This document shows, in pieces, positions 1 through 8,409 of a DNA stretch of 64,000 nucleotides. How positions within the stretch are numbered: position 1 is the first letter of the stretch; each line of letters begins with the position of its first letter. Under the pieces are notes generated by a model that made no database searches, was not told the origin of the DNA, and saw only the letters and a list, made by a program, of their open reading frames with translations. The position numbers were made by a program, and so were the translations under genes. The DNA lies in the IMG/VR virus record IMGVR_UViG_3300047558_000137, positions 310,315 through 374,314 of that record; one strand, written 5' to 3'.

Positions 1-808
1 AATGTCCCATAATCAATGGAGAAAAAGTCTTCTCGGTCACCGATATGGTATTGCCATACTCAATTGATTCTCCGTATATAGAAACAAATGTATTCCTATA
101 GTATTCTCTATGTGGTGGTGCGTATACAATTGGTCTGTGACGACTTATACCACGCTCTAATTCTGCAACATCTCTGCACATAGGTCTTTCTGACTGCGGA
201 AATAGTGCTCTTGGAGGGTTGCTGTCAACGCTTCCTATATAGCCACGATCATTAAACGATTGCAAAAGATCAACTAACATAGTCCTGTATTTTCTAGGAC
301 GATCTGTATTACGATATGTTGTGTTAGTTGAAACAAAAATTTTGTTTTTCTGCATTGCATCAGGATGATCAACTGATTCATAATCACTTGGATGACTATA
401 GTGCAATACATGTGAACTATCACTATATTTGTAATGTTCATAATATGATTTGGTCATATTATATAGATAATCCAAGTAGATGATCTTAGGATGTTCTACA
501 TTTGGATCATAGGCACTAGTAAATGTTAAATCATGCACTGACCCAGGAATTCTATCTAGAATACGCTGTGCTTGATCTTCTTCTACGTGTAGATCAAACA
601 TGATCATTGAGCGATAACTATAAGTCTTATACAGATCTGCGTCAATACAGTCTGATTTATAAAAATTATTTGCAATCAATATGTCAACAGCACCACTATA
701 ATCTGTATTTTTACGATACTGATAGTTGGTATTGTTTAGATCAAAGAACCAACCATATTGATTCTTACGTGTGACTTTGTTGAAGTCTGGGTCTAGTATT
801 GTTAGCAT
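1..808 (-). CDS. Hypothetical glycosyltransferase-like protein (TEKT...PL..GH family), 3' end outside window
   Basis: Not in ORF track. Manual translation from ATG at 808 (MLTILDPDFNK...) appears open to the window edge and ends ...VSIYGESIEYGNTISVTEKTFSPLIMGH, the same motif as ORFs 3942-5051 and 51323-52309. Confidence 0.7.
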   Translation of the reverse strand, partial: MLTILDPDFNKVTRKNQYGWFFDLNNTNYQYRKNTDYSGAVDILIANNFYKSDCIDADLYKTYSYRSMIMFDLHVEEDQAQRILDRIPGSVHDLTFTSAYDPNVEHPKIIYLDYLYNMTKSYYEHYKYSDSSHVLHYSHPSDYESVDHPDAMQKNKIFVSTNTTYRNTDRPRKYRTMLVDLLQSFNDRGYIGSVDSNPPRALFPQSERPMCRDVAELERGISRHRPIVYAPPHREYYRNTFVSIYGESIEYGNTISVTEKTFSPLIMGH

Positions 809-822
809 GTATATATTATATA

Positions 823-899
823 TGGCGACCCCGAATGGATTTGAACCACTGACATTTGGTTTTGGAGACCAACGTTCTGCCGGACTGAACTACGGAGCC
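823..899 (-). tRNA. tRNA-Trp(CCA)
   Basis: GGCTCCG/CGGGGTC acceptor, anticodon arm TTGGT-CT CCA AA-ACCAA, TTCAAAT T-loop, encoded CCA. Confidence 0.95.
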
Positions 900-907
900 A
901 TATTAAA

Positions 908-1121
908 TTTGTAAGTAGTGCTACCATCATTATAAGCACCATTCACCCTTTACGTAAAGCCTAGGCTGGGACTCGGTACGTTACTTGGGATTCATCCAGC
1001 CTGTGCGCCACTATGCACCCGAGTCTTCCGACCCGTTGGGAATCGAACCCACGACCTTTTACTGTTTAGGTAGTTCGAACATACCATTAACAGCGTGACT
1101 TCACTTGCTAACACTTACAAA
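908..1121 (-). ncRNA. Unidentified ~215-nt multibranch structured RNA in tRNA array
   Basis: Terminal 9-bp inverted repeat TTTGTAAGT/ACTTACAAA; internal hairpins TGGG-TTCGATT-CCCA, CGGGTC-GGAA-GACTCG, AGGCTGG/CCAGCCT; fills the gap between two tRNAs. Confidence 0.65.
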
Positions 1122-1124
1122 ACT

Positions 1125-1216
1125 TGGCGGAAGGCGGAGGAGTCGAACCCCATCCCCGTTAGGAGAACCTGGTTTTCAAGGCCAGTCGCAGGACCAACCC
1201 CGCTGCATCACCTTCC
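1125..1216 (-). tRNA. tRNA-Ser(UGA) with 8/4 acceptor/T-stem fold
   Basis: Acceptor GGAAGGTG/CGCCTTCC (8 bp), T-stem GGGG/CCTC (4 bp), anticodon loop CT TGA AA, long variable arm TCTCC/GGGGA, G73, CCA. Confidence 0.9.
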
Positions 1217-1225
1217 ATAATAGAT

Positions 1226-1374
1226 TTTCTGAGTGACCAGCTATCTTTCTCAAGGACTCACTGGCTTGTCTCGTAGAGGAGAGTTTAAACTACCCGATGT
1301 TGCTACTGGTGTGTCAGTCTCAAGAATAGGGACCTAGCGCACCGGGGACTCAATCCAAACGTCTAACTCAGAAA
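1226..1374 (-). ncRNA. Unidentified ~150-nt structured RNA in tRNA array
   Basis: Terminal inverted repeat TTTCTGAGT/ACTCAGAAA nearly spanning the gap between flanking tRNA-type genes; internal hairpins. Confidence 0.55.
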
Positions 1375-1376
1375 CT

Positions 1377-1449
1377 TGGTGGATCAATGCGGGTTCGAAC
1401 CGCTACTGAGACCCATAATGGCAATCCCAGTTACTCCTAGACTTGACCC
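1377..1449 (-). ncRNA. tRNA-like RNA lacking a D-stem, with Ala identity elements (tmRNA tRNA-like-domain mimic)
   Basis: GGGTCAA/TTGATCC acceptor with G3.U70, A73, CCA; GCGG-TTCGAAC-CCGC T-arm; unpaired D-loop GTCTAGGAGTA; long ACTGGGAT/GTCTCAGT stem in place of an anticodon arm. Confidence 0.7.
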
Positions 1450-1455
1450 ATAACT

Positions 1456-1530
1456 TGGTGGAAGTAGCTAGATTCGAACTAGCGATAGTTACCGTATGAA
1501 GGTAGTGCATTACCACTTTGCTATACTTCC
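1456..1530 (-). tRNA. tRNA with CAU anticodon (Met or Ile2)
   Basis: GGAAGTA/TACTTCC acceptor, anticodon loop TT CAT AC, GCTAG-TTCGAAT-CTAGC T-arm, CCA. Confidence 0.9.
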
Positions 1531-1531
1531 A

Positions 1532-1625
1532 GTATTCTAAAACACATTAGTTGCCTAGCTTTGTCCCGGCAGTCGTTACCCGTCAAAAGGATAAAGAGCG
1601 TTTCATCTAATATGCTTTAGAATAC
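1532..1625 (-). ncRNA. Unidentified ~94-nt RNA closed by a 19-bp stem
   Basis: GTATTCTAAAGCATATTAG pairs fully with CTAATGTGTTTTAGAATAC on the minus strand using two G.U pairs (A.C mismatches on plus). Confidence 0.6.
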
Positions 1626-1637
1626 CCTGCATTTCTG

Positions 1638-1768
1638 CAGGATATGATAGGGTTGATACCCTACCCAGTTATTTGTACTCTGCCGTTATCGCCAGCATTT
1701 CATCCAACTGTCCGCCCGTTTGTGGCATGTTTTAAGTGCGCCACCCAGTCCTCGTTACTGGTATCCTT
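1638..1768 (-). ncRNA. Unidentified ~130-nt multibranch RNA
   Basis: Closing AGGATA/TATCCT stem with hairpins CCAGT/ACTGG, GTGGC/GCCAC, TAGGGT/ACCCTA. Confidence 0.5.
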
Positions 1769-1777
1769 CACACTACT

Positions 1778-1942
1778 CTACGGTTGTAAAGTACGTTCTT
1801 CCTGAACTTTTCTGGAACGATAGTGCCTTTCGGCCCGTTCCATCTTATCTTGGATCAACTTGTGTAGCTGTTCCTTAGTAAGAGTATGTTCAGTTGTGAA
1901 CTTTACTTCTCGCATACGTTGTTTCAAATTCACTTGTTTCAT
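1778..1942 (-). CDS. Small basic hypothetical protein (54 aa), first gene after the attenuator-like terminator
   Basis: ATG at 1942 (MKQVNLKQRMRE...) preceded by AGGA; the ORF-track start at 1960 lies in the terminator U-tract. Confidence 0.5.
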   Translation of the reverse strand: MKQVNLKQRMREVKFTTEHTLTKEQLHKLIQDKMERAERHYRSRKVQEERTLQP

Positions 1943-1958
1943 TTTCTTTCCTACAAAC

Positions 1959-1991
1959 AAAAAACCCTAGGGTTTTTAGTCCTAGGGTTCC
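1959..1991 (-). terminator. Intrinsic terminator, putative attenuator
   Basis: AACCCTAGG-ACTAAAAAC-CCTAGGGTT followed by TTTTG on minus strand; its 5' arm GGAACCCT is also complementary to AGGGTTCC in the upstream leader ORF. Confidence 0.8.
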
Positions 1992-2019
1992 TTTTAGTTT
2001 AGAATGTAAGTTTGTTTAC

Positions 2020-2163
2020 TTAACCATCCCATCCCTCTCGGAACCCTGTTGTAATCTCTGGTGTGCGATCACTATTTGTATTCGCAAACAAAGACCAATA
2101 GGCTGACATGCCTAGTCCGGGCTGTTGTTGTTTAAGCGAATGACAGAATGTGTGTTGCATCAT
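2020..2163 (-). CDS. Putative attenuator leader peptide (47 aa)
   Basis: MMQHTFCHSLKQQQPGLGMSAYWSLFANTNSDRTPEITTGFREGWDG*; ATG 7 nt after a consensus -10 box; ends about 30 nt before the terminator. Confidence 0.65.
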   Translation of the reverse strand: MMQHTFCHSLKQQQPGLGMSAYWSLFANTNSDRTPEITTGFREGWDG

Positions 2164-2170
2164 GTTTCCT

Positions 2171-2199
2171 ATTGTATTTTATTTATCTCTTTGTGTCAA
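2171..2199 (-). promoter_or_regulatory. sigma70-type promoter with late-type ATAAATA in the spacer
   Basis: TTGACA-17 nt (caaagagataaataaaa)-TACAAT. Confidence 0.8.
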
Positions 2200-2233
2200 C
2201 CACTATATCAAATAGTGGTAAAATTGTTCATTT

Positions 2234-2324
2234 TGGTAGGAGAGACCGGAGTCGAACCGATATCAGCCAATTATCTGTTGCTACGGGGTATAAGCCCGCC
2301 GTTTTACCATTAAACTACTCTCCC
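2234..2324 (-). tRNA. tRNA-Ile(UAU) with long variable region
   Basis: GGGAGAG/CTCTCCT acceptor, GCGGG-CT TAT AC-CCCGT anticodon arm, ~21-nt variable region, TTCGACT T-loop, CCA. Confidence 0.85.
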
Positions 2325-2332
2325 AGAAAATT

Positions 2333-2418
2333 TGGTGCGACTGGCCGGAATCGAACCGGCACGCCATTACAGCGGGAGATTTTAAGTCTCCTGTGGCTAC
2401 CAATTACACCACAGTCGC
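2333..2418 (-). tRNA. tRNA-Leu(UAA)
   Basis: GCGACTG/CAGTCGC acceptor, GGAGA-CT TAA AA-TCTCC, long variable arm, CCA. Confidence 0.95.
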
Positions 2419-2426
2419 ATCTACGA

Positions 2427-2477
2427 TCATAACAATCGTATTCGTAACTGGAATGTGTCTAAGGTAAGTTGTTTCAT
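2427..2477 (-). CDS. Putative 16-aa leader peptide rich in UUA/UUG/AUA codons
   Basis: ATG AAA CAA CTT ACC TTA GAC ACA TTC CAG TTA CGA ATA CGA TTG TTA TGA (MKQLTLDTFQLRIRLL*); ATG follows the -10 box by 6 nt; stop is 8 nt before tRNA-Leu(UAA). Confidence 0.55.
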   Translation of the reverse strand: MKQLTLDTFQLRIRLL

Positions 2478-2483
2478 GATCTA

Positions 2484-2512
2484 ATTGTAATTTATTTATC
2501 TTTTACTGTCAA
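2484..2512 (-). promoter_or_regulatory. sigma70-type promoter with late-type ATAAATA in the spacer
   Basis: TTGACA-17 nt (gtaaaagataaataaat)-TACAAT. Confidence 0.8.
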
Positions 2513-3369
2513 ATGACTTTTGCATCTGTACAGCTCTTGCATAAACTGCCGCTATTGTAGCAAGGTTCTGCATTCAGTGCAAGCAATTTGGTAAATTCAG
2601 GACCTGTAAACAAATCTTCATACTTTTGTGTTAAAAGATTGCCCAGCACATGCTTGGTATCGTAGTCCATACAGCATAATACTACATCTCCATTAGGCAA
2701 CAAAACGTTTTGGTCATATAGACTTGTTTTACCGCAAACTACGGGCTTTTTGTGTTCTATAGTAAACACAACAGGTTGCTCTTTGATCTGCTCTTTGTTT
2801 AATGTACCTGCACGATCATGGGCCGCAATACTCCAATCATGACTGACGTATACCCCGGGTAAATGGCGAATTGCTGGATGCACTCCATGATCACTCATGG
2901 CCATTGCTTCGTAATGTATACCTGCTGCCTGTACAATTTCACGCATACCAATGTAGGCGTATTCCCATTCTTCACTGAGCTTCCAACCCTTCATGTTACC
3001 TGCTTCGTCAGGAAAGTGTATCTTGAATATGTCAACTTGGCCTGCATGATTTAGTAACAGTTCGCCTACTCTATGTACTGTAGTTTCGTCCCAGTTGTAT
3101 AGTGTAGTAAAGATGGCAACTTGCCTATCATTTTCTAGGGCATACTCTAGCATGTCTGTACAGGCCGGATTAACCCAGGGTTCTGCCATGCCAGAAAAGT
3201 CAATACGACAATCCCATGGTAGTCGATCTACTACTGTTTTAAATGTATCCAAGCTCATATACTTGGCATCTTCTTTACCATATGCATCACGTAGGTTGTC
3301 TTGTGGACAAAACGTACACATTAGGGGACAACCAATCATGGTTGTTATTTCCATTGTTTTGTGGCTCAT
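2509..3369 (-). CDS. Radical SAM protein with SPASM/twitch domain
   Basis: CPLMCTFC (CxxxCxxC) and C-terminal C...GDVVLCC...CKSC. Confidence 0.9.
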   Translation of the reverse strand: MSHKTMEITTMIGCPLMCTFCPQDNLRDAYGKEDAKYMSLDTFKTVVDRLPWDCRIDFSGMAEPWVNPACTDMLEYALENDRQVAIFTTLYNWDETTVHRVGELLLNHAGQVDIFKIHFPDEAGNMKGWKLSEEWEYAYIGMREIVQAAGIHYEAMAMSDHGVHPAIRHLPGVYVSHDWSIAAHDRAGTLNKEQIKEQPVVFTIEHKKPVVCGKTSLYDQNVLLPNGDVVLCCMDYDTKHVLGNLLTQKYEDLFTGPEFTKLLALNAEPCYNSGSLCKSCTDAKVI

Positions 3370-3608
3370 GACTTATTTAACTGTGCCCAAGCGAGCCAGG
3401 ATCTAAAACTTTCATAGACCGCTTGCGCTTCTTTATCATCTTGATCGATTCGTACTCCACGCACATAGAAACCATTATGGCTCACACGTAGCATTTCTTC
3501 TGAACCTGAATGAAAAATAATGCTATTTTTTGCCGCTTCAATTGCATCTACATCGATACTAAACAACTTTTTTGGGGGTTGTTCGTAGTTAAACTGAGAG
3601 GTGGTCAT
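3366..3608 (-). CDS. Hypothetical protein
   Basis: ORF tightly packed with neighbours. Confidence 0.7.
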   Translation of the reverse strand: MTTSQFNYEQPPKKLFSIDVDAIEAAKNSIIFHSGSEEMLRVSHNGFYVRGVRIDQDDKEAQAVYESFRSWLAWAQLNKS

Positions 3609-3945
3609 GCTTAATTTCCCTTACTGGATCGCCCAATGCTTCGGCTAGGTTGTTCTTAATTGTAACACGTATGTTATTATAATTACGAATTTCAACTGCT
3701 CTGCGCCCAATCTCCTCGTAGCCTAGGTTGTCTTCTAGTCCGCGACGTAGATCGCTTTCCAATGCCCAAATGCTTAGATGCACAACTTCTAGTCGCTCAA
3801 GCAATGGCTGTACAGGTTCTAGATCAAATCTTTTGGCCTGTTCAGCATAGTAATCGTATTCAGCTTGGTTACCTAGACCTTTATCTAGTTTAATCTTGGC
3901 AATTACTAATCGATCTAATAGTTCTACTACTGGGAAAAATATCAT
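3589..3945 (-). CDS. Hypothetical helical protein (ELLDRL...IW.LE..LR family)
   Basis: ORF with 4-nt overlap to upstream gene. Confidence 0.75.
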   Translation of the reverse strand: MIFFPVVELLDRLVIAKIKLDKGLGNQAEYDYYAEQAKRFDLEPVQPLLERLEVVHLSIWALESDLRRGLEDNLGYEEIGRRAVEIRNYNNIRVTIKNNLAEALGDPVREIKHDHLSV

Positions 3946-5051
3946 ACGTACTTCTTAAATTGTTCTAATGTTAAGTCAGGAAGATTAATGTAATCTGTGT
4001 CTGCATATTGTGGCAGTGCATCAATTAAGATTTTATACAAATCAAAATAGACTTCTTCTGCTAAACGATACATAATCATTCTGTTATGCTGACGAATTTC
4101 TTGTGTTGGCTCAACAAGTTTTACATCAGATTTAACTAAGCGTTCAACTTCTGCGGCCACTGCACGTAGGCGCTCTCCTGGATACTCTAGACTATCGTAA
4201 GACTCATCTATTAGATCGCCAAACGTTTTAAACCCAAAGGCATGTAAGTGTCTAAGTGTATATTGCCCGCCTACTACAAGAAATGGATGCCCAACTAATA
4301 ACGGCTTGTATGTTTTCTCTGTTACAAAGGTTTCGTTAGGTGCTGTTTCCAATGCTAGACTAAATTCTGTGTGCCAGTAATGCGGCGGATAGAAGTTTTC
4401 AAATCTAAAATCTTCATGGAAGTTTGCATTGGGCCAATCAATGATTGGCTTAACATCTAGTTCAGTACGATCGGGAATTCTGTAATCAATGAAGCTGTGG
4501 ATGCTTTGATTTAAGATATCTCGTTCAATCAGTTCCTTAAACATTTCTTCTCTATTGTGTCGGCGTGTGCCATTTAAGAAAAGATATTTAAAAGTCTTTG
4601 GAAATGTGCTGATACCATCTGCGGTATATGCAAGTCTAGCACGATTAAACTCTGTAGTTAGTCTATAGACAAAATACTTGTCTAGATTGTGTTCAACGAA
4701 ACCATCAACTGCCCTATTGCCTTGCTTAACCAAGTGAATAGGTATGCGTCTACGCACATAGTCCCTAGTGGGGTAATAACTACTGCTTAGTGTACTTTCA
4801 CACTCACTTGGATAGTAGAAAATAATTGGAATGCCCAGGCTAGCACAACGATCAATAATTTGCTTGGCATAGTCGCCATCGTTGCCCGGGACTTCTTCAA
4901 CAAAGGCATCTGTTATTACAGCATCGCCTGTAATATCTTCTGGATTTTTTACAATGGTGTAGGGTATGTTATACAGTTCCAGTACTGTAGTTAATAATCG
5001 ATTTCTTGCACTACTAGGCCCAAGGGTCTGTCGAATTAAAAAATTTATCAT
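3942..5051 (-). CDS. Glycosyltransferase-like protein (TEKTYKPL..GHPF family)
   Basis: Start corrected to MINFLIRQ (5051), because the longer ORF overlaps tRNA-Leu; ETAPNETFVTEKTYKPLLVGHPF resembles the GT10-like motif. Confidence 0.65.
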   Translation of the reverse strand: MINFLIRQTLGPSSARNRLLTTVLELYNIPYTIVKNPEDITGDAVITDAFVEEVPGNDGDYAKQIIDRCASLGIPIIFYYPSECESTLSSSYYPTRDYVRRRIPIHLVKQGNRAVDGFVEHNLDKYFVYRLTTEFNRARLAYTADGISTFPKTFKYLFLNGTRRHNREEMFKELIERDILNQSIHSFIDYRIPDRTELDVKPIIDWPNANFHEDFRFENFYPPHYWHTEFSLALETAPNETFVTEKTYKPLLVGHPFLVVGGQYTLRHLHAFGFKTFGDLIDESYDSLEYPGERLRAVAAEVERLVKSDVKLVEPTQEIRQHNRMIMYRLAEEVYFDLYKILIDALPQYADTDYINLPDLTLEQFKKYV

Positions 5052-5057
5052 GTTATA

Positions 5058-5134
5058 TGGTGCGGATGGTGGGACTCGAACCCACAAAATTTGGCTTCTA
5101 AGACCAACACGTATACCAATTCCATCACATCCGC
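5058..5134 (-). tRNA. tRNA-Leu(UAG), short variable loop
   Basis: GCGGATG/CATCCGC acceptor, TTGGT-CT TAG AA-GCCAA, 5-nt variable loop, CCA. Confidence 0.92.
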
Positions 5135-5145
5135 GTATGTGATCT

Positions 5146-5174
5146 AGTATAGTGTATATATCTTTATTTGTCAA
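5146..5174 (-). promoter_or_regulatory. sigma70-type promoter for tRNA-Leu(UAG)
   Basis: TTGACA-17-TATACT. Confidence 0.8.
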
Positions 5175-6768
5175 GCGGGTATAGCATTTTATAAAAATCT
5201 TTTGATGCAATACCTGTTAAACTTTGTTCTCTATACTTTTCACCCAGTTGATTAAAATACTCGATTGCCAGTGATTCAGTGTCCGAATCTAATTCTGTTA
5301 ATAATCCCTCTGTCGGTATATCATAGTATGTAGCCTGCGATACCCAAACACTCCTAGACCATAGATACTTTTTATTTCTAGCATCAACAACATTTCTTCT
5401 ACTTGTATTATTAATTAAATCATACAACATTTGAATCGAGTTTTGCTGCCTACCAACTTCTCTCATGTTTTCCCAATAAGGAGTATCCTTTTTGCAAAGA
5501 TGAAAGGCAAAACGAATACGTAGTAGTGTATCTGCCATACGCATATTAACATACTCGTTGAAGTCTTCTTTCCATGTGCAGTCTAAATTTGTATCTGTTT
5601 TTAGATTGTCTACAACAAATTCAATTTTGCCTAGTGCAGTTGAAAAAGCATTAGCATCATACGCATCTACTAATCCATGACTTAGCCCTATTGTTATACA
5701 ATTATTAACAAATGCTTTTTCTTGGTATCCAGGCTCCCATGAAATTAATCTAAAGTCTACATCTGTTTTACCAGTTTTTTGGTAATACTCATCCTTTAGT
5801 GATTCAACATTGGTTGTATGGCGAGAATTGAATACATATCCCTCGCCACTACGAACATCCATTGCTACACTAAAATGCCAACCTTGATCCATTGCACGAA
5901 TGTATGCATTGCTAGTTCGTTCGTTATCGTCGGTATATTTGTGTGGCCCAACAATGCATCTATCATTGAATGAATCATCTAGATGCTTAAACTTGTAGGG
6001 TAATTTTTTGCACAAAACTCTAGCGAAGCCAGTGCAGTCAAAATATAGATCTGCTGTTGCATGTGAGTCATCGTCTAATAGTAGATAATCAATATCGCCA
6101 TTTTCTTTTAACACAACATCCTTAATTGCAATAGGTAACTCTTTAACACCGGCTGGCTTGCCTACCATATTATGAACCACTGCCCCAATTCGCATAGCAT
6201 TAATATGATATCCAAATGTGCCACGTGGATGATTCCATTGCCCGGTTGTTATATTATAAGGTATTCTATCGTTACGCGAATACCAATAAGATTGGCTTGA
6301 ATGTCCTGTATATAAATCCTTAGGAGTTCTATACTCTAATTGATTTAGTAGGCCTTTATTTTTTAAGTACAACCATACATCGAGCATATCATATGGTGTT
6401 TGCGATTTATAAAAAGATGAATACTTTACTGCATCTATTCCACTCTCTTTAAAATCATTAAGTATTCCCATGTTAGGAACATCAGCATGATTTGTGTAGA
6501 AAACTGAATTGCTGTTATCCCAGTCCTGAAACCGAGACCCTACTCGAAATATCGATCCCGATTCTTTAATCCATTTAATATCTTTTTCAAACCCTAGCAC
6601 CTTGTTCATAAAAGATGATGAGTTCCATTGTAGTGCTTCTCCTACTCCCACCACTGGAGTTTTTGGATCGTATATAAGTGTTACGTCTAGATCTGGTCTA
6701 TTACGCTTAATAGCAGATGATACAAAATTGCCGGCTGCGCCAGCGCCAACAACAATTATTTTTTTCAT
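5164..6768 (-). CDS. Tryptophan-halogenase-family flavoprotein (divergent)
   Basis: Start corrected to MKKIIVVGAGAAG (6768); VGVGEA and ADLYFDCTGF motifs. Confidence 0.85.
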   Translation of the reverse strand: MKKIIVVGAGAAGNFVSSAIKRNRPDLDVTLIYDPKTPVVGVGEALQWNSSSFMNKVLGFEKDIKWIKESGSIFRVGSRFQDWDNSNSVFYTNHADVPNMGILNDFKESGIDAVKYSSFYKSQTPYDMLDVWLYLKNKGLLNQLEYRTPKDLYTGHSSQSYWYSRNDRIPYNITTGQWNHPRGTFGYHINAMRIGAVVHNMVGKPAGVKELPIAIKDVVLKENGDIDYLLLDDDSHATADLYFDCTGFARVLCKKLPYKFKHLDDSFNDRCIVGPHKYTDDNERTSNAYIRAMDQGWHFSVAMDVRSGEGYVFNSRHTTNVESLKDEYYQKTGKTDVDFRLISWEPGYQEKAFVNNCITIGLSHGLVDAYDANAFSTALGKIEFVVDNLKTDTNLDCTWKEDFNEYVNMRMADTLLRIRFAFHLCKKDTPYWENMREVGRQQNSIQMLYDLINNTSRRNVVDARNKKYLWSRSVWVSQATYYDIPTEGLLTELDSDTESLAIEYFNQLGEKYREQSLTGIASKDFYKMLYPLDK

Positions 6769-6776
6769 AGATAAAA

Positions 6777-6853
6777 TGGTGCGCCCGGAGGGACTTGAAC
6801 CCGCGACCAATGGATTATGAGTCCACTGCTCTAACCAACTGAGCTACAGGCGC
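6777..6853 (-). tRNA. tRNA(CAU), probably Ile2 (lysidine type)
   Basis: GCGCCTG/CGGGCGC acceptor, GTGGA-CT CAT AA-TCCAT, CCA; body resembles bacterial tRNA-Ile2. Confidence 0.9.
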
Positions 6854-6864
6854 AACAAGTCTCT

Positions 6865-6893
6865 ATTATATAGCAGGCATCTTTTAATGTCAA
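6865..6893 (-). promoter_or_regulatory. Perfect consensus sigma70 promoter
   Basis: TTGACA-17-TATAAT immediately upstream of the tRNA. Confidence 0.88.
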
Positions 6894-6901
6894 CTTGGTA
6901 T

Positions 6902-7654
6902 TTACCGACGCTCGATATCCTCTTCAATACAATCTGTGCCGTACTGTATTTCTACAATTTTGCAAGGTGTATTAAACGGGTTAACTAAACGATGCCATCC
7001 GCCACGTGGGATGTGTATACTCATATGTTCGCTTAGTTCCTGTACTGGCATGAAATATCCATTATCCATTTGCTGTTCGACAATGCATTGTCCTTCGCTA
7101 ACGTGCCAGTATTCAGAACGTTTCCAGTGTCGTTGCATACTTAAACTCTGCCCGGGATTTACTGTTAACTCTTTTACTTTAGTACCAGCAACTTCGTGTA
7201 GTACACGATAGTACCCCCATGCACGTTCAGTCTTAGGCGCTTTCCATTCTTCTAGGATCCAACTGCTACTGTTAGCTTTATTCTCTCCGCCAACACCAAA
7301 TTTAAAGACTACATCTTTCTCAGTCATTTCTGGAATATTATCTATTGTTCGGTCACCGCCGTTAGCAAAGATAATTTCATCGTTTGGATATAATTGTTTG
7401 ACTAAACGAATAGCATTAGTAGAGCTACCATCATCGTCATTATATGCAATTACATCATCCACCATTGATAAATTTTCAATAATAACAGAACGCTCAAACC
7501 ATGGCATAAAAGCTCGCCCCTTTTTGCGCTCAAGCCAGTCATCGCTGTTAACTCCGACTACAAGACGATCGCCTAACTCTCTGGCGGCTTTAAAATAGGC
7601 AATATGCCCGCTGTGGATAGGATCAAATCCGCCTGTTACTAATACTATTTTCAT
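6902..7654 (-). CDS. Cytidylyltransferase-like domain fused to cupin (mannose-6-phosphate isomerase type II C-terminal-like)
   Basis: GGFDPIHSGH (HxGH) N-terminal domain; RAWGYY...LSMQRH..RSEYW...EIQYG...EEDIER cupin. Confidence 0.9.
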   Translation of the reverse strand: MKIVLVTGGFDPIHSGHIAYFKAARELGDRLVVGVNSDDWLERKKGRAFMPWFERSVIIENLSMVDDVIAYNDDDGSSTNAIRLVKQLYPNDEIIFANGGDRTIDNIPEMTEKDVVFKFGVGGENKANSSSWILEEWKAPKTERAWGYYRVLHEVAGTKVKELTVNPGQSLSMQRHWKRSEYWHVSEGQCIVEQQMDNGYFMPVQELSEHMSIHIPRGGWHRLVNPFNTPCKIVEIQYGTDCIEEDIERR

Positions 7655-8409
7655 TAATTTGTAATCTTATAAAATTGTTTGTCTAGCCAACATACAACTA
7701 GATCATCTAAACGTGCGTATCCATATTTGTTTACACTGTTTACTAGACTATCATTGATTAAACCAGCATCGGCCAGGTCATACCAACTAGTATCAGGACT
7801 TAATGGTTCCATGTCCATTGCATAAACTGCTGCATATAACCAAGGACTGTTGTCTTTACGATAGAAGTACGCATCATTGCAATCAAATCCATTGATAGCC
7901 AACATGTAAATTAAGTTTAAGATATTATACCCAAACCGTTGCTTGTGATGACTTTCAATAACAATACGACCATTATATGCATAGGTCATTTGTGGAACTG
8001 CCAACATTAGCATTCCGTTAACATTTAAAGTCTGTTTCCATGCCTTTAAACATTCATAGGGATCTGTGGCTAACTGTAGACTGTTGTGGCTCCAAATTAA
8101 ATCAACCTTAACCGGAAGGGTCCCGTATCGTTCAAAATTTCCCTCAACTGGGATTATATTTGGGTTATCTTTTAGTACGTCTGGATCTAGTCTACTAATG
8201 TCTTGGTCAACTGCATATACTCGATAGTTCCTTGGCTCAGGTGGATCATCACGAGTATGTAGTGTTGCCCACCACGCAGTATCTAACCCGGCGCCACATC
8301 CCATATCGGCTATCGTAGTTAAGCTATCTAAAAAACTGTCATAGCCATAGATTAAATTTAGAACTTCTAAACTATGTTCATGACTATCGTATGAATTTTT
8401 AAACACCAT
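7654..8409 (-). CDS. Class I SAM-dependent methyltransferase
   Basis: IADMGCGAG motif I; DLIWSHNSL; LNVNGML. Confidence 0.85.
   Translation of the reverse strand: MVFKNSYDSHEHSLEVLNLIYGYDSFLDSLTTIADMGCGAGLDTAWWATLHTRDDPPEPRNYRVYAVDQDISRLDPDVLKDNPNIIPVEGNFERYGTLPVKVDLIWSHNSLQLATDPYECLKAWKQTLNVNGMLMLAVPQMTYAYNGRIVIESHHKQRFGYNILNLIYMLAINGFDCNDAYFYRKDNSPWLYAAVYAMDMEPLSPDTSWYDLADAGLINDSLVNSVNKYGYARLDDLVVCWLDKQFYKITN

Follow-up and report, generated by a model that had tools for sequence, protein, structure and literature searches.

A candidate leader-peptide attenuator with a nearly all-amino-acid leader in front of a phage tRNA array

How might a large phage decide when to transcribe its own tRNA genes? 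Phage tRNA genes are usually discussed as aids to codon usage or as spare parts against tRNA-cleaving defences, and how their expression is controlled is almost unknown. The question is raised by a short stretch on the minus strand of a 64,000-nucleotide window (the whole stretch of DNA that was analysed, positions 310,315 to 374,314 of IMG/VR record IMGVR_UViG_3300047558_000137), which is part of a 374-kb uncultured viral contig. The window encodes a tail sheath, a portal and a large terminase, and the nearest cultured relatives are PA5oct-like jumbo phages at 55% terminase identity. A first-pass annotation, made from the sequence alone, had noted a promoter, a 47-codon ORF and an intrinsic terminator in front of a tRNA array, and had proposed that the ORF is the leader of a ribosome-controlled attenuator which senses the loss of almost any host tRNA. 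The observation is confirmed base for base, and the elements to be considered are the following.

2171-2199, minus strand: near-consensus promoter of sigma-70 type, TTGACA (2199-2194), a 17-nt spacer and TACAAT (2176-2171), followed by seven nucleotides (AGGAAAC) before the ATG at 2163.
2020-2163, minus strand: leader ORF of 47 sense codons plus TAA (2022-2020), which starts ATGATG and is probably leaderless.
2085-2114, minus strand: hairpin TAGGC-loop-GCCTA (2114-2099) followed by a U-rich stretch, a candidate RNA polymerase pause site by inference only.
2040-2047, minus strand: 5' strand of the antiterminator helix, AGGGTTCC, inside the ORF at codons 39-42.
1984-2047, minus strand: whole predicted antiterminator hairpin (-24.4 kcal/mol), an 8-bp basal helix plus inner helices, with the stop codon in its apical part.
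1984-1991, minus strand: 3' strand of the antiterminator, GGAACCCT, the exact complement of AGGGTTCC, shared with the 5' arm and flank of the terminator, so that the two folds exclude each other.
1959-1989, minus strand: intrinsic terminator with 5' arm 1989-1981, 9-nt loop 1980-1972, 3' arm 1971-1963 and six T's 1964-1959; the 9-bp stem can be extended to up to 13 bp with A/G-U pairs.
1778-1942, minus strand: small ORF of 54 codons, of unknown function, with its own purine-rich ribosome-binding site, the first gene after the terminator.
1532-1760, minus strand: conserved structured RNA of unknown class, directly abutting the first tRNA.
1456-1530, minus strand: tRNA-Met(CAT), the first tRNA of the array.
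1129-1216, minus strand: long-arm tRNA-like gene with anticodon loop CUUGAAA, so probably Ser-UGA; it is not called by ARAGORN and matches the tRNA-Sec model at 37.9 bits, below the gathering score.
823-899, minus strand: tRNA-Trp(CCA), after which the array continues beyond the window start with Glu, Tyr, Asp, Gln, Ile, Asn, Thr and Ala.

Could such a layout arise by chance? The promoter pattern TTGACA-N17-TAYAAT occurs 3 times in the window against 0.05 expected, and the promoter at hand is one of four of the same type in window positions 1-8000, all sharing an AAAGAT-type spacer motif; two of these four near-consensus copies sit 11 nt before tRNA 5' ends. The terminator palindrome is unique in the window, with 0.01 expected. 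A perfect 8-bp complement between about 50 nt of ORF end and about 17 nt of arm plus flank has an estimated chance of roughly 0.7%, which alone is only suggestive. The 33 distinct sense codons and 19 amino acids (Val is missing) of the first-pass annotation are exact counts, but the codon diversity of this single leader is only moderately unusual: random 47-codon windows of the phage's genes have 27.3 +/- 3.3 codons, which places the leader in the top 4% for codons, and it is in the top 7-10% for amino acids. The case therefore rests on conservation and covariation in relatives.

Relatives were sought by three independent routes. The neighbouring radical-SAM gene gave one locus (L002), the terminator palindrome gave four more loci and a distant group of four (the L039 group), and back-translated leader peptide motifs, which are blind to the RNA structure, gave a further series. 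A fourth route used only a 14-nt motif of the downstream structured RNA. Here, 65 loci carried the extended motif, and a composition-blind procedure, which takes the nearest upstream intrinsic terminator and the longest ATG ORF ending within 70 nt of it, found a leader in 54 of them. Of eight loci with full upstream sequence in which no leader was found, four had leaders with weak U-tracts, recovered by eye and all with 20 amino acids, while the other four were GC-rich chance hits. In total the module occurs in at least 70 uncultured viral and metagenome contigs. There is no DNA match beyond the tRNAs, and no peptide match, in GenBank phage records, and PA5oct has no such leader before its tRNA array. 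Among cellular sequences, 34 hits to a 20-base gapped motif are about what chance predicts (about 28), and on inspection they lack the rest of the RNA, except for one 2-kb metagenome scrap. The leader and the structured RNA gave nothing in Rfam, Pfam or PHROGs, with no Rfam match other than tRNAs at E up to 1 in window positions 1-8000 or at E up to 0.5 in seven related loci.

In the family, the order is promoter, short ORF of 28-73 codons, intrinsic terminator, an optional small ORF, the structured RNA and a dense tRNA array. Homologs of the small ORF, which has no Pfam match and only weak PHROG matches, sit at the same place in most lineages and are absent in others, where the terminator is only 23-55 nt from the structured RNA. 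This RNA has 43 predicted pairs, 21 of them with compensatory changes, and its motif is found in more than 60 viral contigs. A tRNA array follows in all 16 relatives with enough downstream sequence, the other two loci being cut short, with up to 11 tRNAs in the next 2.2 kb; pooled over the loci, the arrays cover all 20 amino acids. The first things gated are the small ORF and the structured RNA, and only then the tRNAs, which corrects the first-pass description of a gated tRNA/ncRNA array. No strong promoter lies between the terminator and the array in the window. Transcripts from an upstream promoter at 2512 probably also enter the leader, because no terminator is seen after tRNA-Ile, and in those transcripts AGGA 6 nt before the second ATG could serve as a ribosome-binding site; both points are inference.

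Consider first the RNA. In all 18 close relatives the 3' part of the ORF can pair with the 5' arm of the terminator and its upstream flank, and the paired bases change together: TTCC/GGAA in the window, TCC/GGA in four lineages where one base is lost on each side, TTCTTA/TAAGAA and TTTAAAG/CTTTAAA, as well as C-G to T-A swaps. In one relative, L068, an A-T pair has become G-C, and the 3' arm of the terminator has changed to match as well. The terminator stem also covaries, with CCCTAGG, CCCTGG and CCCCAGG variants that each have a matching 3' arm. A plain alignment of the antiterminator region with MAFFT and RNAalifold predicted no pairs, because the helix shifts register between lineages, and a core-anchored alignment and a covariance-model alignment were used instead. 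With the former, matched strands give a summed helix score of 115.5, against 94.6 +/- 4.5 when strands are permuted between 13 lineages, and none of 100,000 permutations reached the observed value. With the latter, 79.9% of cells are paired against 73.8% in shuffles, 7 pairs are changed on both sides against 3.3, and the covariation score is 0.206 against 0.111 +/- 0.013 (0 of 500 shuffles reach it), while slid controls reach at most 0.079. That alignment is fitted to the structure and contains two spurious rows, and relatedness inflates such tests, so that more weight is given to the explicit compensatory changes and to an independent set of 50 distinct leaders found through the downstream RNA motif. 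In this set, the duplex energy against the terminator arm has a median z of -3.1 relative to random segments of the same locus, and 82% have p<0.05.

The 5' strand of the helix sits in reading frame 0, 1 or 2 depending on the lineage, and L002 keeps AGGGTTC through a compensated frameshift; the constraint is therefore on the RNA. The antiterminator hairpin is present in the minimum-energy fold of all 18 close homologs when the 3' arm of the terminator is left out, and often even in the full transcript. For the window, the antiterminator fold is predicted at -33.2 kcal/mol and the terminator fold at -28.7 kcal/mol. The hairpin at 2114-2099 folds on its own at -12.5 kcal/mol and is nearly invariant at the nucleotide level, third codon positions included, in the 13 closest relatives, but in predicted folds it does not pair with the antiterminator strand, and no other upstream segment that does so was found. 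From this follows the prediction that without a ribosome the transcript is read through, and that termination needs a ribosome that keeps pace. The first-pass annotation had called this the classical trp/his layout, but it does not appear to be the four-segment arrangement.

Consider next the ORF. Frame 0 is open in every relative examined, while the other two frames carry 1-8 stops, and indels upstream of the antiterminator are 3, 6 or 15 nt. Variation over codon positions does not show a clean third-position excess (21, 18 and 23 variable sites), and synonymous and nonsynonymous counts give no clean coding signature, because RNA-level constraints overlie the coding constraint; the coding argument therefore rests on frame maintenance, in-frame indels and composition. 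Where tabulated, in the 18 close relatives and 54 further leaders, the stop codon lies upstream of the terminator arm, inside or at the 5' edge of the antiterminator hairpin, a median 9 nt after the 5' strand and 20-34 nt before the terminator arm. Among 61 distinct leader starts, 33 begin ATGATG and 39 have a promoter match of at least 9 of 12. The -10 box lies 6-10 nt before the ATG in 38 of these 39; it ends 6-7 nt before the ATG in 30 and 9-10 nt before it in 7 more. The mRNA is therefore probably leaderless or nearly so, although a minority instead have a purine-rich 5' leader.

It is across the family that the composition of the leader becomes compelling. Of 65 distinct leaders, 28-73 residues long and falling into 27 clusters at 45% identity, 42 contain all 20 amino acids, 15 contain 19, 7 contain 18 and 1 contains 17, while all 20 occur in 3.2% of length-matched windows of long ORFs from the same loci and in 1.8% of the 1,460 other small ORFs there. 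With one median member per cluster, the Fisher combined p is 5e-10 with the phage composition as null and 8e-13 with the leaders' own pooled composition as null. The distant L039 group packs all 20 amino acids into 28 residues, for which the iid p is 2.4e-5 with the window-gene composition and 1.3e-4 with the pooled-loci composition, and which none of 12,614 real windows does. Leaders of 38-41 residues with all 20 occur in several unrelated clusters. Furthermore, a mean of 19.2 of 19.5 distinct residues lie upstream of the antiterminator strand, and 30 of 50 leaders already have all 20 there, although the last roughly 4 codons before the antiterminator add about 1.3 amino-acid types, and a ribosome stalled at these might already mask the strand, so that those residues may not be sensed. 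Some leaders lack 1-3 amino acids, most often Val or Cys. Given the peptide, the number of distinct synonymous codons is also slightly high, with a mean z of +1.1 and 94% of leaders above expectation. Leader codons are, in contrast, not enriched for those Watson-Crick-cognate to the phage's own anticodons (0.51 against 0.565), which means that a feedback loop is not visibly tuned at the codon level. The three comparative tests proposed in the first-pass annotation, ORF conservation, covariation and excess diversity against genome-matched controls, all came out positive.

These results are best explained by a ribosome-mediated transcription attenuator that acts as a gauge of aminoacyl-tRNA supply or translation speed in general, rather than of one amino acid, and that controls the phage's own tRNA supply. 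This reading is supported with fair confidence, but its function is inferred from sequence comparison, with no measured transcription start, termination or ribosome occupancy. Transcription would start at or within about 3 nt of the AUG, so that a ribosome loads as soon as the 5' end emerges, and the first 33-45 codons would be a test track that holds (nearly) every amino acid once or twice. When the ribosome keeps pace with RNA polymerase, it would run through the 5' strand of the antiterminator to the stop codon inside that hairpin and hold it open, the 5' arm of the terminator would be free to pair with its 3' arm, and transcription would stop at the U-tract. When any aminoacyl-tRNA is short, or translation is slow or absent, the ribosome would lag, the more stable antiterminator would form first, and the polymerase would read through into the small ORF, the structured RNA and the tRNA array. 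The new tRNAs would restore translation and shut the gate again, giving closed-loop control. As no anti-antiterminator was found in the predicted folds, any failure of initiation would also lead to read-through, which would make the device a sensor of translation as a whole.

In its furthest form, which is somewhat more likely than not, this reading makes the leader a deliberate all-20-amino-acid test track that a virus reads with the host's own ribosome to run its private tRNA set. It would then also work as a tripwire against any defence or stress that removes a tRNA, such as anticodon nucleases or tRNA depletion after host shut-off, whichever tRNA is hit. Induction by anticodon nucleases, as suggested in the first-pass annotation, is a plausible trigger.

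Among the alternatives, the one that survives best, although it is unlikely, overlaps with this reading and differs only in what limits translation in nature. The switch could report global translation capacity or timing, i.e., whether leaderless initiation and elongation keep up with transcription (free 70S ribosomes, initiator tRNA, initiation factors, the stage of host shut-off), and the composition would then only make the track representative of average phage genes. The predicted read-through fold of the untranslated state, the dominance of leaderless starts and the lack of match to the phage's anticodons are in accordance with this view. However, a merely representative ORF would not need every rare residue, and the presence of all 20 amino acids in 65% of leaders against 2-3% of controls, and in one 28-residue leader, points to selection for complete coverage.

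Less probable is a specific nascent-peptide arrest, as in tnaC or secM, where conserved motifs in the leader would stall the ribosome in response to a particular small molecule or factor. Residual motifs do recur across divergent leaders: His near the N-terminus, Trp in all but one leader (usually one, mid-peptide), and N-S/D-D-R before the antiterminator. Little beyond composition is, however, shared between the 27 clusters, only 3 columns are invariant among six lineages, and some of the conserved stretches, for example the hairpin at 2114-2099, are constrained as RNA. It is also improbable that the unit is an independent small gene or a dual-function small RNA, with the tRNA array expressed from other promoters or by constitutive leak-through and the complementary segment only shaping the stability of the 3' end. 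A promoter plus about 205 nt plus a terminator is the shape of a small-RNA gene, and attenuator RNAs and leader peptides can act in trans in other systems (PMC6614838, PMC7298713), but this is hard to reconcile with the covarying, mutually exclusive folds, with the position of the stop codon and with the constant placement of the unit directly upstream of the structured RNA and tRNA array. A chance ORF with chance complementarity next to an ordinary terminator is refuted by the conservation with covariation in at least 70 contigs.

Full-text literature searches found no description of a phage tRNA-array attenuator or of an all-amino-acid leader. If the element, about 240 nt in all, works as inferred, some large phages make tRNAs on demand, a textbook mechanism is extended from sensing one amino acid to sensing all of them, and the switch is also a compact genetic reporter of translation health.

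How does the element compare with known systems? With the leader-peptide transcription attenuators of amino-acid operons (trp, his, leu, thr, ilv, pheA; PMC1183508) it shares a short ORF upstream of the regulated genes, an intrinsic terminator between the two, an alternative helix that uses the 5' arm of the terminator, and an ORF that overlaps the 5' strand of this helix, so that ribosome position would decide which helix forms and a lagging ribosome would give read-through. It differs from them in that there is no run of codons for one amino acid but (nearly) all 20 are present, in that no anti-antiterminator (1:2) segment was found in predicted folds, so that the untranslated state is predicted to read through instead of super-attenuating, in that the leader is mostly leaderless, and in that the target is a tRNA array in a virus and not biosynthetic enzymes. 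The leaderless polycysteine short ORFs that act as cysteine-responsive attenuators in mycobacteria (bioRxiv 10.1101/834739) are likewise first cistrons whose translation controls a downstream operon, but they are cellular and sense one amino acid through a codon run, while here the composition is maximally diverse and the switch is an explicit terminator/antiterminator pair. The toiL upstream ORF of E. coli topAI-yjhQ, which senses several classes of ribosome-targeting antibiotics (PMC12121999), is also one short ORF that acts as a broad sensor of translation stress, where stalling at different positions gives the same output; it responds to drugs, probably through Rho-dependent termination and translation of the downstream gene, and appears to have neither an all-amino-acid design nor a link to tRNA genes. 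T-box riboswitches monitor tRNA charging by a terminator/antiterminator choice as well, but they bind one specific uncharged tRNA directly and need no ribosome. Stringent control of cellular tRNA and rRNA promoters by (p)ppGpp and DksA probably follows the same logic, in that synthesis of stable RNA is tied to the supply of charged tRNA at the ribosome, but there the sign would be opposite, since starvation lowers cellular tRNA synthesis, and the mechanism would be an alarmone acting at the promoter rather than a cis-acting RNA switch read by the ribosome.

Between the attenuator and the first tRNA lie two further elements, which are, in order of transcription:

window 1778-1942, minus strand: a 54-codon ORF directly after the terminator
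window 1532-1760, minus strand: a conserved structured RNA of about 230 nt

The ORF has its own ribosome-binding site, and homologs are present in most lineages and absent in others. It has no Pfam match and only weak PHROG matches to families of unknown function. The structured RNA is found also in the viral loci L041, L059, L046 and L051, and in more than 60 others. It is characterized by hairpin loops that hold AACGAGG and a CACUAUAA-like sequence, by the block AAACGGGCGGACAG, and by a long closing helix, and of its 43 predicted pairs, 21 have compensatory changes. No Rfam family and no GenBank phage match it.

Further structured stretches occur at window 960-1450 on the minus strand, where several tRNA-like or structured segments are not called by ARAGORN. 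These include 1447-1377, which has an acceptor-like stem and a CCA end, as well as 1375-1220 and 1120-960, which show long-range complementarity and T-arm-like motifs. The tRNA-Ile with anticodon TAT at window 2234-2324 (minus strand) is unusually long, 91 nt here and 94 nt in L041, which suggests an insertion or a long extra arm.

Four near-consensus promoters share a spacer motif of the AAAGATAAATAAA type, and two of them sit 11 nt before tRNA 5' ends:

window 6865-6893, minus strand
window 5146-5174, minus strand
window 2484-2512, minus strand
window 2171-2199, minus strand

Relatives often carry a second GATAAATAAA copy about 30 nt upstream of the -35 box, and this copy may be a regulator or UP-element site. 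The promoter at 2512 is followed after 6 nt by an ATG, which opens a 16-codon ORF (window 2427-2477, minus strand) that ends 8 nt before tRNA-Leu(TAA). This may be a second leaderless mini-ORF in front of tRNAs, or it may be chance. At window 2509-8409 (minus strand), tRNA genes are interleaved with auxiliary-metabolism-like genes, i.e., those for a radical SAM/SPASM protein, a tryptophan-halogenase-family protein, a cytidylyltransferase-cupin protein, and a methyltransferase. The mechanical ORFs 3942-5210 and 5164-6810 run over tRNA genes only because of upstream TTG starts.

Among the leaders of loci L054-L187, three C-terminal endings (of the types EGWDG, GDGYA, and GEKIPRI) recur in otherwise unrelated leaders. 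They look like interchangeable apical hairpin cassettes of the antiterminator, shared at the nucleotide level, perhaps by recombination. Upstream of the leaders in loci L085, L108, and L163 there are repeated short promoter-plus-transcript units containing TATACTTCACACATGAATTGAGAAAA, and these may be additional small RNAs. One leader clade (L083, L087, L128, L143, L168, L174, and L085) lacks the sigma-70-like -10 box and has instead CTAAATA 8-9 nt before the ATG, which is reminiscent of T4-type late promoters and which, if so, means that the timing of leader expression differs between clades.
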